From: Bugula neritina
Lineage: Eukaryota > Animalia > Bryozoa
Direction of reading: 5' to 3'
Length of the DNA stretch: 64,000 bases
Assembly (NCBI GenBank): GCA_964035545.1
Contig: OZ037773.1
Coordinates: forward strand, 6,291,751-6,355,750
Position 1 is the stretch's first letter; each line of letters opens with the position of its first letter. A program made the position numbers and the translations under genes. Shown here one piece after another: positions 35,736-54,225 of the stretch. The notes under the pieces were generated by a model. The model did no database searches. It was not told where the DNA came from and saw nothing but the letters and a program-made list of their open reading frames with translations.

Positions 35736-43217
<7,482 letters not shown>

Positions 43218-48200: not shown

Positions 48201-51200
48201 GAATTGTAGTCACCTGCTACTTATAGTATATGCTATAATATTCTAAGGAGTAGTTATGATTTTGATGTTTGATGGCTAAACTTTGTAGATATTGTTTTAT
48301 AGCATATATTATTATGCTTTAAATCCTAATTTTGAACATTAATTTATAATATAATATATGTATAAGTTGTATGGTTCAATAAAATCTATGAATACTATCT
48401 CTAAACATTTTATTTATTATTATGGTCTTTGAATAATTAGAGAAATACTTTACAACTTCTAACCACTGCATAGATAATTGTTTGCTCCTTGTTGCTAAGC
48501 AACCACAGCCTCTAGCGTTGACAAGTTTTTATGACGGAGTTATCTCTCCCATTACAGACATCTCAAGTTGGAACCAGAAGAGAATATGTTGGATTCACAA
48601 TATTTTGGTAAATACTTTTCGTTCAACACAGTTAGAAACCCGTGGACCAGACTTGTCAGTGCTTTCACTCACAAGTTCCTCAACTCGCACGACTACATTT
48701 ATATGGCAGCCGCTGACAAGTGCTTTGACAGACACAAGTGAGAAATTACTCATCATTCTTCTTAATTTCATGTCATTTCTTGCATTGTATTGTATATCAT
48801 GGCTAATGGTATACTAAAACAGAAATTTGGGCAGCTAGCTAAAGTAAGATACTTACTGTAAAATATATTGTAAATTCTACCCAATAACATAGCCATAATT
48901 ATAATACACAATAATATTAATTAATACACAATAGTTGTGATATATTGTCATAGTCATAATAACAATACACAATAATAATAAGCAATGTAGCGTAATTGGT
49001 ATAATAATACACGATATAGTCCCTATGCTCAAGATTATGTAATATCATTAATGGCTTTCCAGAAATTCTATGGTTGAAAAGCAAAAACTTGAAGTTTTTA
49101 ACAAACTTTTTTAATTAACAGTGAATTGTGTTAAGTGGCATCAAATATATATAGCATAGTAACATCACAGTACATTAGTGTAGGTATTGTATATTACAGT
49201 AGATTGGTATATATTATAATAATATATTGCATCATATAGTAATAATATAATTATGACTTCTACATCTGCTTAATTGCAGTGGGCAAGTGAATTAGTTTTA
49301 ATCTCAAGCTCTGAAGAGTACATTGCAATATATTATTTTATATTTTCATTATCTCTTGCATCATCGATAATTCTAGTCATCCCAATGATATAGAACTTGG
49401 CAGCACTGTAGTTAAATAATGTTACTGCTCTCATAATATACATTATAATGTAGACATTGTGCATCTATAGAGACCATGCGATTGGTCACATCTATGGGAA
49501 TCAGAATTGCTATTTCGTAGCAAAAAGTAAACATTTTTAAACAATAATTGTGCACTGGGCTATCATTGTATGACTTGAGTAACAACATGTAAAAATATGG
49601 TCAAATAACTTAACAAATCGTGCTGGAGAAAATGACACCATTTCATATTCTATATTCTTTAAGATTTTTTTTGTTTACTGAAATTTTGGGATTGTTATAG
49701 GTTAGAAAGTGCTGTATTGTATACTAGAAGTCTTAGTTAGATTCGCTTAAAAGATATCATGAGAGAGTAACTCTACATATGTCATACATGAAGTTTAGAC
49801 TATTTCAATTTTTCATATATCATATTTCAACAGTTGATATGTATATATGAGTATGTAACTATATGTGGAAAAATCATTATTTTATAAATTCTCTGCAATA
49901 TAAAGAACTTACCATTCAAAATGTATATATTTATTCGATTTTATAAAATTTAATATAATATGAGTATATAAACATATAAAATAATTGAGTAATGTAATTC
50001 AAATATAGATTTAAATAGTTAAGTTGCACCAGTTCTGACTACGTCACAATACTGCATCAATTCATTGCTGGAACAAGCGTTGGATATGCAGCAGTGACAA
50101 CTTAAGTCTTGAAGTCTTTGCTCTGCCATCAGATCCTCAAAGTCTATCGGGTCTGAAATCCAAAGTCAGAATAGAATTAATAGTTTTAATTATTAAATAA
50201 TGCTAAGCTTCTTATAGTAGGGGTAACGGGGGCACAACGGGCCGAATTTTGCATTTGTTGCTCTCATTTGTCTGCTTTTTAAGTTACTAGTTCAATAATC
50301 TCTAGTCTTAATGCTGCATCTGTTGTCTATTACAGGTACCAGTTTGTTGTTTCTATCTCTCTCACAACTTTCAGAATAATGAAATTTTCATGACAAAAAA
50401 ATTGGCCCATTGTGCCCCGGTACCGGGGTACAATGGGCCACTGGGTGGAACTCGACAAATATATTGAAACTTTGCGTATTTTGTTACATCTGATCTTTAT
50501 TTATTTAATATTACAAACAAATAAAGATACTCTTTAAGATCTACAGCAAAATTCATGCTTTAGCTGTACAGTTTGTGCCACTACGGATAGCAGAGGAAGG
50601 CAAAATCAAACGCACATCACTCGGTTCTATAGTGCCATTATCATTACTGTTTAAAACTAAAAATGTTCTTTTATTTTCACTTCAGAGGAACTTTTATCAC
50701 AAAAAAACTTTAGTTACATGTACTACAAAATTTCGAGTAGACTTTTTCTATAAACTGTAGCTAAGGTGCATGGCTGAGATTTGTGATTGGAGTACGGAAA
50801 GGAGAGGCGGGAGCAAATGAGCAAATCACAATTTATTTTAGTCAAGTACATGAATATTCTCTCAATGGTGTAATATATAATGAATATCATGACTATCTAC
50901 TAGTAGCAACAGCAGAGTGTTTTGTATTATGTATAAAATGGCAAAGCTTTAACCTCATCAGATGTATATATTAAGGGAGCTTCAACTTGTAGTTTTGTAG
51001 TCTTACCATGATCTGATGTCTTTGATATTTTACAAAAAGGTCAGAAATAGCTATATCTATAGATTTCAGTAACATTTCAACCAACTTTTTGGGCAAACAA
51101 ACTAATAACAGTGATCAGGGTGCAATAATCAGCTGGCCCGTTGTGCCCCGGTCAGCACGGCTCATTGTGCCCCGTGTGGCAAAATTGAAAATAAATGTGC

Positions 51201-51520
51201 CTCAAGGAAAATTTATTTTAGAATTTGCTGTTATACTAGTTAAGCAATGTAGAGACAAGCAATGGCAACAATATTAGTAAAATATAGGCTTCTTGCCTTT
51301 GAGTGTAAAAAGTTATAAAGCTTTAACGACATCCTAAAAAATTTACAAAAAGTAGGTAAAAACAGTTTTTTGCTCGCCTTTTCAACACGTATGTTCCGCA
51401 AGTGATGAAACTACAAAGGCTGAATAATTATGTCAATATCTTTTTATGAAAAAAAAATCACAACTCTAAGTTTATAAGTTCTCTCACAATTTGGCCGGCT
51501 CTTTGTACCCCTATGACCGT

Positions 51521-51564
<44 letters not shown>

Positions 51565-54225
51565 TTACCCCTAATATAGGTACAGTAAGAAAAAAATCAT
51601 ATATGGTCTGCTAGTGGTCTGCTAGTGATCTGCTAATGGAGTGCTAATGGTCTGCTAATGGTCTGCTAGTGGTCTGCTAGTGGTCTGCTAGTGGTATGCT
51701 AATGGTCTGCTAGTGGTATGCTAATGGTCTGATAATAATCTGTTGATGATTTCTAACTATCACAGAATATTGTAAATTGTTCAAAATATCAAATAGAATG
51801 TAAAGATACAACAAACCAGTGAGTTTTCTAACCTGCCCAGTGACCATCTCTGATCATCCACTGTAATATATTATATAACATGCATACTGAGGGCCAAGCT
51901 TGTAATATCTTATAGCTTTTCTGTACAGCTCTGCATTAAAAACTGAGTTGGATTAAAGTGGATAATATAACTTATAACTTGAAACTTAAAATAAATGTTT
52001 TCACCGATTGAACACATCCATGACTTTAAGTATCTCCCCCCCTCCCCCCCCCCCCCGTCCCTCAGTTTACAGGAGTGTAAATGTTGGTAGTGATTCATTT
52101 AGGTTAGTTTAACTTTTAAACTCAATGACCTAGTTCTTAAGATGACCTAGTTCCTGAGATGACCTAGTTTTGCTCACCTCTCTGCTCCCCACTGCCAGGA
52201 CATCTGTTTTCTAGTAAATTAAGCACAGGAACAAGACATCTCATAGATTGCAAGAATTCACTTTCTGTACAAGCTCTAGGAACATGCTGGTCCAGTTTGA
52301 CTGGTGGTGTCAGTAAAAGCAGCACCCCAACTGCTGTTAGCATCCACCTGTAGATGTAGTTATCATTTTCAATAGAATTAATAATAGACCTGTTAATAGC
52401 CATCAATATGTTACTACTTTATCTATATTTTACTACATAAGAAATTGTTTATTTTTGCAATACAAATGTTATATGCAACCACTTGCTCAAAATGATTATA
52501 TTGTTCAACATCTACTGTAGATTTGGCTCTGGTTATTCATGTGATTTCCAACTGCAGCAGTTTATATTCTTACATATACAGAAGAACTGATAAGCATTAC
52601 CAATATATAGAATTATTGTTTCTTTGACTGTAACATAGTATAAAATATATTATGTTAAGTTATCTTACCTCACCATGTTACTGTAACTGTGTCTGCAGCC
52701 CCTTCTAAAGCCTCACTTCTGGCTGTATTATATTTATACTCTACTTGGTTCTGCCTCATTACATTGACAAAATCTTGCTAATTGTTTTCAGGTTACACAA
52801 AAACTGTAAAACAATTACGATTTTTATACCAACTTCAATACAATGGTAACTCTTGAAACTTTTTAATTTATACTAGCTAGCACGTTGACATTATGCAACT
52901 GTAAAGCCTAGATGCCAACTACTAATATAATATGATTTATATATCATATAATATATATAAAACAATTATACTTTACATAATAATATGTAGATGCTCTATA
53001 ATATATCACGTAATAGCTAATAAATTGTTTAAATACTATTTGTTGTTCAAATTTTTAAAATAAGCTTTGAAAGAAAAAAAGGTTCTATGTAAAACATTTC
53101 ATAGCTTAATATAGAACTTTTTTGCCCCTTTATCAGGCACTTAGAAAATATTTACACAAACTGCACTACCGTATCGCACTTTTTCATTAGCGAGTGCTTT
53201 GAGTTACTGTCAAAGTGATCACATGCATGCAAGTGAAATATCTTCACGCTAGACAATACTTCTGCAGGAAACTGACGGCCCGACACATAAAATGGACATT
53301 CCAGAGATTTCTAAATGACTGCGTGATTGACTCCTGGGAGAGGAAGGGGGCGGAGAATATGGATGAGCACTGGAGGCCGCAGAGCCTGTTGGGTTCTTTC
53401 TGCACAATGGATTACACATATATAAGTAAGTAGAACAGTACGTTATATATTAGTAAGTATAGAATAGTACGTTATATATCAGCATATGGAATAACTGTAA
53501 GTGCATAGAGTAGCATATACATATAACTGTAAAATACAGATGTCATAAAAGTGTGTGCTGGTTACATCGATGACCTAGTAAACCCGAGTTTATGGGCTTA
53601 AACCCCAGTAAAGGCCATTGGTGATGTTAGGAAAAGCATCCAGTCATAATTGCTCCTGGGCCACATATGAATAAGTCTTTAGCCCATTTTAAATAAAACT
53701 TTTTCATCTGTGGTGGGGAAGTTCTCACAGGGATGTGTGTAAATAGCTTAATGATATAAAGAAAGCATATAATATAATGTGTCACAGTACATTCTGATAT
53801 AGGTCATCATCATTATCGGTTTACTAAATATTATTTAACATTTTTAAATGCTTTAATGTGTATAGCATATATTATAATTTGATAATTTCAATCCAATTTA
53901 TAATTATAACTTATCAAAAATCTTATCATAGTTAGACTGGTTTATTGCCCTTCCTAAGAGCAGTATCATACATCTATTTTTAGATAAGTTTGAGACGGCT
54001 CAGCTAGATCGGACTGCTCTACTTTATAAATTCAGTGTCAGACAAGGCTTTGACCAAATCATGGCAGATTCTTCTGCAAACCGAGAGAAGTTTGAGAAAC
54101 ACAACACCACCGCAAACACGTACTCCAAACTCTGGGGTGAAACGAGCACAGCTACAATAAATAAACTCAAAGTAATTTACGATTTAGATATAAGACTCTT
54201 TGACTATCCAGCAACACCTCTGTGA
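45230..54225 (+). CDS. Golgi carbohydrate sulfotransferase (Sulfotransfer_2; CHST8-14/HNK-1ST-like), ~379 aa
   Basis: Exons 45230-45348 (type II anchor YLVLTLAAFSVIVISL), 46281-46533, 46919-47106 (5'-PSB CRMPKTGS), 48558-48737 (3'-PB VRNPWTRLVSAF), 53268-53425 (TFQRFL...DEHWRPQ), 53984-54225 (KFET...IYDLDIRLFDYP). 1140 nt in frame. Confidence 0.9.
45935..46255. repeat. 19-bp minisatellite (tattactatgagtacaata) x~15 before a sulfotransferase acceptor
   Basis: Tandem units ending ~25 nt before the AG at 46279-46280. Confidence 0.9.
46581..46742. mobile_element. MITE family A copy
   Basis: ttaaattcagccattttgttcctata...cacatacataagctacaaaatgg...gaaatggaaccgtgagatatggagagag. Confidence 0.7.
47332..48107. 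mobile_element. Non-autonomous CACTA/CMC-like DNA transposon (776 bp) inserted into a MITE B copy
   Basis: ~35-bp TIR cac(c/g)ggctttccatgtaccgatctcagatcgatct; 3-bp TSD cat (47329-47331 and 48108-48110); many subterminal agatcgatct palindromic repeats at both ends. Confidence 0.8.
50019..52676 (-). CDS. Insulin-like peptide precursor (8 Cys, molluscan-insulin-like pattern), 103 aa, nested antisense in sulfotransferase intron 4
   Basis: Exons 52676-52669, 52347-52178, 50152-50019, all GT-AG, 312 nt. Translation MVRWMLTAVGVLLLLTPPVKLDQHVPRACTESEFLQSMRCLVPVLNLLENRCPGSGEQRDPIDFEDLMAEQRLQDLSCHCCISNACSSNELMQYCDVVRTGAT*. Signal peptide; B-chain C-x11-C; A-chain CxCC-x4-C-x8-C ending ELxxYC; phase-1 intron in the C-domain. 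Confidence 0.82.
50220..51571. mobile_element. Non-autonomous DNA transposon with TA target duplication (Tc1/mariner/pogo-like), ~1.35 kb, inside the insulin-like gene intron
   Basis: TIR ggggtaacgggggcacaacgg / ccgttgtgcccc(C)n-gttacccc. TA on both sides (50218-50219 and 51572-51573). Internal copies of the ttgtgcccc motif at ~50410, ~51140 and ~51165. Confidence 0.8.
51604..51731. repeat. 11-bp minisatellite (tggtctgctag) x~11
   Basis: Visible tandem units. Confidence 0.9.
53550..53735 (+). mobile_element. tRNA-derived SINE copy
   Basis: aaaggccattggtgatgttaggaaaagcatccagtcataattgctcctg...ttctcacagggatg matches 16180-16393. Confidence 0.75.

Follow-up and report, generated by a model that had tools for sequence, protein, structure and literature searches.

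Does the small three-exon gene on the minus strand of an intron in the bryozoan Bugula neritina belong to the insulin family, and if so, have the published surveys of that family missed it? The gene lies on chromosome 9 of assembly GCA_964035545.1, which comprises 216.0 Mb in 9 chromosomes (PMC11863921). We studied it in a stretch of 64,000 nucleotides (contig OZ037773.1, positions 6,291,751 to 6,355,750 of the forward strand), here called the window; positions are those of the window unless a chromosome is named. An earlier note, made from the letters of the window alone, had described an insulin-like peptide gene nested in an intron of a sulfotransferase gene. In our judgement this is quite probably a real, single-copy B. 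neritina gene, whose precursor of 103 (or 99) residues is a divergent peptide of the insulin superfamily, and which belongs to a family of five loci with a CHCC motif in the A domain.

The gene model itself stands. The earlier note had reported three minus-strand exons with GT-AG introns that encode a secreted precursor of 103 residues, and its coordinates and sequence are right. The segments 52676-52669, 52347-52178 and 50152-50019 join in frame to give 312 nucleotides, that is 103 codons and a TAA stop, and both introns are of the GT..AG type. The coding part of exon 1 (52669-52676, ATGGTGAG) supplies Met-Val and two further nucleotides before a phase-2 donor, GAG|GTAAGA. Intron 1 (52348-52668, 321 nucleotides, phase 2) ends at the acceptor TCTACAG|G. 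Exon 2 (52178-52347) carries the core of the signal peptide and the B domain, and stops in phase 1 after GEQR. Intron 2 (50153-52177, 2025 nucleotides) lies inside the C domain and runs from GTGAGC (donor GAG|GTGAGC) to TTTCAG (acceptor GATTTCAG|A). The C-domain junction therefore reads GAG AGA G|gtgagc ... cag|AC, in phase 1, as in the insulin superfamily. The coding part of exon 3 (50019-50152) holds the rest of the C domain, the A domain and a tail, DVVRTGAT, with the stop at 50021-50019. It is followed by a probable 3′ untranslated region (UTR; 49910-50018), in which AATAAA (49935-49930) lies 84 nucleotides past the stop, so that the 3′ end would fall near 49910.

The least certain exon, and the weakest part of this model, is the 8-nucleotide exon 1. 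A TATA-like box, TATAAATA, can be read directly on the minus strand at 52738-52731, 55 nucleotides 5′ of the proposed ATG, and may act as a promoter element. Translation could also begin at an ATG within exon 2 (52343-52341), which would give a product of 99 residues. A scan for bacterial promoters near exon 1 was set aside as irrelevant in a eukaryote. As the earlier note had warned, the A-chain exon is easily missed in a list of open reading frames (ORFs): it appears there only as an ATG ORF of 36 residues, which is under the usual thresholds.

The predicted product is built like a secreted precursor of the B-C-A order, namely from a hydrophobic N-terminus (MVRWMLTAVGVLLLL; MVR and a hydrophobic core of 12 residues), a domain with three cysteines, a linker and a domain with five. 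The B-domain cysteines are at positions 29, 40 and 52. The C-x11-C pair of the earlier note does exist, as the second and third of these (C40 and C52), but the full pattern is C-x10-C-x11-C. The C-x11-C spacing is common to all the paralogues described below and to eight canonical B chains of this species; the usual Gly after the first core cysteine is absent from the nested gene. The linker between the two domains comprises 25 residues, is acidic, and contains two single Arg, both in E-Q-R, so that no dibasic sites flank a C peptide as they do in molluscan insulin-related peptides (MIPs). The A domain is C78-H-C80-C81-x4-C86-x8-C95, followed by the 8-residue tail; here too the earlier sequence was right, but the spacing is CC-x4-C-x8-C and not the canonical CC-x3-C. 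The extra cysteines typical of MIPs are both present, with C29 placed 10 residues before C40 and an A chain that opens C-H-C-C. A prediction of a two-chain complex from the B-domain and A-domain exon products scored 0.05, which is evidence neither way.

The insulins already known from this species provide the yardstick for judging kinship. Wong et al. (2016) described six cDNAs, BnILP-A to F, all of the CECC type with KR/RR dibasic sites (PMC4990251), and a 2025 screen placed the insulin-related genes of Bugula on chromosomes 3, 6 and 7 only (PMC11863921). Across all 216 Mb of the assembly, the Pfam Insulin profile (PF00049) matches eight loci, which lie on contigs 3, 6 and 7, and their translations are the Ensembl B. 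neritina models of the PMC11863921 supplement, at the same chromosome coordinates. The suggestion that the nested gene might be unannotated is borne out, in that it is absent from the published B. neritina insulin lists and from the large protein collections that we searched. We also observed canonical CECC A-chain exons outside the gene ranges of the 2025 screen, at C3:31641062, C3:31649586, C3:31652669 and C7:11223410, the last with a matching B exon at 11223948. Judged by these exons, the number of A-chain exons in the canonical Bugula family appears to be ten or more.

It is against these canonical sequences that the nested gene shows its relationship. When a hidden Markov model (HMM) is built from the genome's ten canonical A chains, the A chain of the nested gene scores 23.5 bits (E 4.5e-5 for a proteome of 20,264 proteins), while the best of 1000 shuffled sequences reaches 13.5 bits; a combined B and A model gives 26.9 bits. 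In pairwise comparison with eight canonical A chains the A exon has z = 6-11, a score reached by 0/500 shuffles. When the three types of CHCC sequence described below are aligned by hhalign with the eight canonical insulins, the probability is 97% and the score 50.1, and 8/8 cysteines fall in register; among 200 column shuffles the best score is 19.2. The relationship can also be seen in reverse. A profile of the family's A exons, searched over the whole genome, finds as its next match past the five members a canonical A chain at C3:31652657 (E 0.0037). This genome-wide reciprocal match, and the matches at positions other than cysteine (C-S-x-N-E-L-x-x-Y-C), do not depend on cutting sequences by their cysteine pattern.

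Searches further afield were less informative. The best match in the PDB is the A chain of the cone-snail insulin Con-Ins G1 (E 0.07), and the neighbours of the A exon in a protein language model are PF00049 clusters (0.78-0.82), which we take as a lead only. The ORF of exon 2 retrieved nothing from a word-index protein search, not even itself, so the exon 2 protein is not in that collection. An exhaustive phmmer search of the A-chain exon against 1.84 billion representative proteins found one ORF of 43 residues (P0001), which comes from the sibling contig discussed below; it reads through the intron/exon boundary and therefore carries no evidence of splicing. A scan of metagenomes with the A-exon alignment, in a collection from which records close to the B. 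neritina genome may be missing, gave 144 pattern matches, 0 of them confirmed. The exact 20-nucleotide probe for the junction of exons 2 and 3 had one match among metagenome contigs, a chance match in a bacterial contig with unrelated flanks.

The nested gene is not alone in its genome. A whole-genome search with the A-exon peptide gave a weak second locus on chromosome 9 (paralogue 1), and profiles of the A and B exons extended the family to five loci, all on chromosome 9, at 6.34 Mb (the nested gene), 4.374, 4.336, 4.323 and 4.302 Mb. The CHCC motif is invariant in all five, and the copies at 4.336, 4.323 and 4.302 Mb are near-identical and in tandem. Paralogue 1 has a B domain C-x11-C-x11-C and an A domain CHCC-x5-C-x8-C, and its Smith-Waterman score against the nested gene has z = 18.6 relative to shuffles. 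A third type, paralogue 2 (4.30 Mb), has a B domain C-x8-C-x11-C and an A domain CHCC-x5-C-x9-C. In these two types, which we detail here, a phase-2 acceptor precedes the hydrophobic core and a phase-1 donor lies just past the third B cysteine. A phase-1 intron in the C domain is conserved in relaxin, Dilp7 and insulin genes (PMC11863921); the earlier note had invoked this rule, and the nested gene and paralogues 1 and 2 all conform to it. The first intron of the nested gene, like theirs, is of phase 2.

These paralogues also bear on the doubtful first exon. The B exons of paralogues 2 and 3 have no ATG and begin at a phase-2 acceptor, as in the nested gene; they therefore need a short upstream coding exon. 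A candidate for paralogue 2 is ATGAAAAG|GTGAGG, 368 nucleotides before the acceptor and with a TATA-like box 69 nucleotides upstream. It mirrors ATGGTGAG|GTAAGA, 321 nucleotides before the acceptor of the nested gene, and is the best support for an exon 1 of 8 nucleotides. The search for exon 1 of paralogue 1 gave several candidates, none of them convincing. Paralogue 4 (C9:4335733-4336342) differs in that its B exon is in another frame between the signal peptide and the first cysteine, with RVVSKSTASSHNL and not NEWFPSRQLPVII, owing to an indel of 1 nucleotide. With this frameshift in the B exon, paralogue 4 is probably dead, a pseudogene by the look of its sequence.

A further line of evidence comes from a sibling form of the species. 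A metagenome contig of 1884 bp from JGI (L012) is genomic DNA of this form and covers most of the nested locus. Relative to the window, the part of exon 2 that is present is 94.1% identical, exon 3 93.3% and the 3′ UTR 90.8%, all without indels. The corresponding figures for intron 1, intron 2 and the downstream sequence are 72%, 84.5% and 83%, with many indels in each. Of the coding changes, 8 are synonymous and 7 non-synonymous, and the cysteines of the covered parts and the position of the stop are kept. Taken together, the conservation in a sibling species and the existence of five family loci argue that the nested gene is not a chance ORF.

Evidence of expression is more limited. Only two sequencing runs contain the A exon. 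One (X2) comes from DNA of this same species and covers introns and exons alike. The other (X1), labelled as symbiont metagenome RNA-Seq (2016), is of the sibling type, about 91-94% identical to the window; it carries the spliced transcript of the host gene and so does hold RNA. In this run, contigs cover exon 2 (52195-52349) at a depth of 184 and exon 3 at 225; two stretches of intron 2 reach depths of 48 and 30, and at 52402-52575 in intron 1 the depth is zero. At 52349, where the acceptor lies, the alignment of the exon 2 contig ends and 7 of its letters remain unaligned. That it leaves the genome here, although the sibling genomic sequence is near-identical at this point, points to a spliced upstream exon. 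We conclude that the nested gene is likely expressed, while its exact splice junctions are unproven in RNA.

The nested position is well established. The flanking plus-strand exon pieces at 48568-48735 and 53269-53433 match Pfam Sulfotransfer_2 (E 1.1e-8 and 2.9e-4), and a contig of the RNA run joins 48737 to 53268 with GT..AG, skipping 4530 nucleotides at a depth of 262. Together these confirm that the whole gene lies within an intron of 4530 nucleotides on the plus strand of a carbohydrate sulfotransferase gene (48738-53267), where the earlier note had placed it. Small genes nested in introns are common in animals. Paralogue 1, the copy whose surroundings were checked, sits outside any intron, between an upstream FN3-domain gene and a histone cluster; nesting is therefore not a trait of the family but particular to the copy at 6.34 Mb. 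The depth of contigs is similar for host and nested exons in the bulk RNA run, a poor measure that is neutral on interference between the two genes. The position of the gene looks like a local accident of gene placement rather than a regulatory design. The histone cluster (H2B, H2A, H4 and H3 ORFs on alternating strands) occupies C9:4376731-4379343, about 2 kb downstream of paralogue 1.

Intron 2 carries a mobile element, a MITE-like DNA transposon that spans about 1.35 kb (50213-51578), with terminal inverted repeats of 20 nucleotides (TATAGTAGGGGTAACGGGGG; 50213-50232 and 51559-51578) that are 95% complementary. Words from it reach a depth of about 1e5 in the DNA run, so it must be very high-copy, and it is absent from the sibling contig. 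The interior of the element contains copies of a palindrome, GGGGCACAA(C/T)GGGCC. Long poly-G runs lie at 51517-51574, next to the transposon, and at 52040-52062; reads seem to be cut at the first of these. A short tandem array of CCATTAGCAGA/CCACTAGCAGA units, at about 51600-51740, adjoins the end of the transposon. Elsewhere in the window, in about 1.2 kb at 37872-39115, both strands contain long ORFs in several frames and the GC skew is extreme (0.655 in 38001-40000); this is probably a low-complexity or simple-repeat tract.

Several observations weigh against the conclusion that this gene makes a functional insulin-type peptide. The check that the earlier note had proposed, a match to Pfam Insulin (PF00049), failed as we ran it: the nested locus is not among the eight loci of the whole-genome search, and hmmscan of each exon product separately gave no insulin match. 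The canonical A-chain signature, CC-x3-C-x8-C, is replaced by CC-x4-C-x8-C. Loops of the CC-x4-C and CC-x5-C kind are known from Dilp6, Dilp7 and ILP7, all accepted members of the superfamily (PMC11863921 supplement), so the loop does not exclude membership. The B domain scores 0.7 bits against the canonical B chains, with no detectable similarity beyond the cysteines. The mini constructs used for the HMM and hhalign comparisons were cut by cysteine pattern, so that the register of the cysteines is partly built in. No read or contig was seen to cross either junction of the nested gene, and a 90% identity threshold applied to a diverged sibling may cause part of the exon-limited coverage. The sibling contig lacks 87 nucleotides (L012:321-324 against window 52141-52229), which removes the last 52 nucleotides of exon 2 and the donor; if this deletion is real, the sibling copy would be broken there. 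Finally, the receptor and the processing route proposed below are purely inferred.

Three other explanations were weighed. The one that survives best, which we nevertheless hold to be improbable, is that the nested gene descends from the Dilp7-type (ILP7) lineage rather than from a MIP-type duplicate, and might signal through a leucine-rich-repeat G-protein-coupled receptor. This type, represented by Drosophila Dilp7 and by ILP7 of oyster, Owenia, starfish and acorn worm, is defined by a phase-2 intron in the region that covers the signal peptide and the B chain, together with a C-domain intron of phase 1; its A chains carry CC-x4/x5-C (PMC11863921). The CHCC family has introns of phases 2 and 1 and loops of x4 or x5, and unlike it the canonical Bugula insulins that we examined have their ATG in the B exon. 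Like the nested gene, Dilp7-type peptides have no Gly after the first core B cysteine, and the lophotrochozoan members have 8 cysteines. A genome-wide motif search found no ILP7 hallmark elsewhere in the genome, and the 2025 screen reports no bryozoan ILP7 (PMC11863921). That said, the phase-2 intron of the nested gene follows codon 2 and precedes the hydrophobic core; it does not separate the signal peptide from the B chain. Dilp7-type peptides have the A-chain motif ECC-x4/5-C-[STV]-W-E-E-x-A-E-x-C and, between the signal peptide and the B chain, a Trp-rich spacer; the nested gene has only the loop length in common with them, and neither the WEE-x-AE motif (WEE[FYLV]AE) nor the spacer. The extra cysteine pair is placed as in MIPs, with a far N-terminal B cysteine and CxCC, whereas in ILP7 it forms C-x3-C and lies in the C-terminal tail. 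ILP7 precursors carry dibasic sites and the nested gene has none. The second half of its A chain matches canonical Bugula insulins at 7/10 positions, compared with about 4/10 for ILP7. The relaxin/LGR3/LGR4 receptor files of the 2025 screen, moreover, list nothing from B. neritina (PMC11863921).

Less probable still is that the gene is a decaying relic of an insulin gene, transcribed but no longer making a hormone. The 87-nucleotide deletion in the sibling contig, the frameshifted B exon of paralogue 4 and the lack of classical processing sites would all fit such decay, as would three non-synonymous variants found within the species by the DNA run at 50032, 50119 and 52199 (T100N, Q71P and P53S). 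The variants, however, all lie outside the cysteine cores, and the Q71P state is shared by the sibling contig and the RNA run. The sibling-type RNA run contains the stretch that the contig lacks, in contigs over 52057-52349, so an allelic difference or an assembly error may account for the deletion, a pseudogenised copy being the other option that we considered. In the reference genome the ORF is intact with 8/8 cysteines, and in the comparison of the two forms the exons and 3′ UTR are clearly better conserved than their flanks, without indels.

The last alternative, a chance ORF or a secreted cysteine-rich protein with some other fold, such as one like the cystine knot, that mimics the cysteines of insulin, can draw on the silence of Pfam Insulin, on a B domain without sequence similarity to insulin B chains and on the paralogue motif CHCC(R)P, found in Norrin as SCHCCRPQ, but we reject it as very improbable: the Norrin match spans 8 residues with E 3.5-5.2, the nested gene has no CxGxC motif and only 8 cysteines, which align one to one with those of the genome's 8-Cys insulins, its A-chain similarity is significant against shuffles, its exon structure is of the insulin type, and the five loci with their conservation in the sibling exclude chance.

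We therefore return to a divergent insulin-superfamily peptide as the best explanation, and can outline how it may work. The precursor would consist of a signal peptide, a three-Cys B domain, a connecting domain of 25 residues and a five-Cys A domain. By analogy with the canonical 8-Cys insulins of the genome, it would adopt the insulin fold with three classical disulfides, and a fourth would link the first cysteine of the B domain to the first of the A domain. The absence of dibasic sites and the IGF-like spacing of the B and A cores suggest secretion either as a single chain, as in IGF, or after cleavage at a single basic residue. In all three CHCC types an Arg or Lys followed by Leu is found 5-8 residues before the A-domain cysteines, and this could be a monobasic cleavage site. 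The most probable target would be a tyrosine kinase of the insulin-receptor type: the genome contains receptor L-domain loci of the kind found in insulin-receptor and EGFR-type kinases, and this, with the missing LGR entry in the 2025 screen, favours such a receptor. The five loci on chromosome 9 are presumed to have arisen by duplication.

A bolder hypothesis, to which we give a minor but not negligible chance, is that the CHCC loci are an unrecognized, bryozoan-specific branch of the insulins, whose members act as single-chain hormones, IGF-like or Dilp7-like, with a receptor preference of their own. If true, bryozoans would have a second insulin-type signalling axis, missed by profile-based surveys. 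The nested gene illustrates a point of wider importance for comparative endocrinology, that gene lists built by HMM screening of annotated proteomes can miss peptide genes that are short, divergent and nested in introns. The known insulin set of B. neritina, which consists of the six cDNAs of 2016 plus the genes that the 2025 screen placed on chromosomes 3, 6 and 7, would gain a subfamily of up to five loci. Furthermore, the combination of MIP-type cysteines, an A loop of the Dilp6/7 type and an IGF-like architecture bears on the divergence of insulin, IGF and Dilp7 in the Spiralia. The CHCC peptide is, however, not a new kind of molecule, as a comparison with known systems makes clear.

The closest of these are the canonical BnILPs and the MIPs. 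They share with the nested gene a signal peptide, B, C and A domains, 8 cysteines, a B core of C-x11-C, an extra cysteine 10-16 residues before the core B cysteines together with CxCC (in canonical Bugula B chains the upstream spacing ranges from x10 to x16), and a phase-1 intron in the C domain. The end of the A chain, C-S-x-N-E-L-x-x-Y-C, is near the CSLNELLEYC of a canonical gene on chromosome 3. The differences are equally clear. Canonical Bugula insulins read G-I-[VIY]-CECC-x3-C-x8-C, then a basic site and, in nearly all, a long extension. The nested gene has CHCC and CC-x4-C where CECC and CC-x3-C are invariant, no G-I-[VIY] before the A-chain cysteines, and neither the basic cleavage site nor the long extension after the A chain. 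Its C domain is 25 residues long, compared with about 45-80 in canonical BnILPs, it has an additional phase-2 intron near the start codon, and PF00049 is silent on it. The earlier note had assigned the peptide to the type of the molluscan insulin-related peptides; this holds for the extra cysteine pair, but not for the CC-x4-C loop, the missing B-chain Gly or the lack of dibasic sites. With IGF and Dilp6 the nested gene shares the lack of a dibasic pair and a connecting domain that is short: between the cysteine cores it has 25 residues, and human IGF1 has 28. Dilp6 also has CC-x4-C. Unlike IGF, the nested gene has no D and E domains and 8 rather than 6 cysteines; the likeness seen here is one of architecture. 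Because the extra cysteine pair is placed as in MIPs, and insulins of that type are also the nearest to its A chain in the second half, we take the nested gene, from its sequence, to be an offshoot of the 8-Cys spiralian insulins that is divergent and has an IGF-like architecture.

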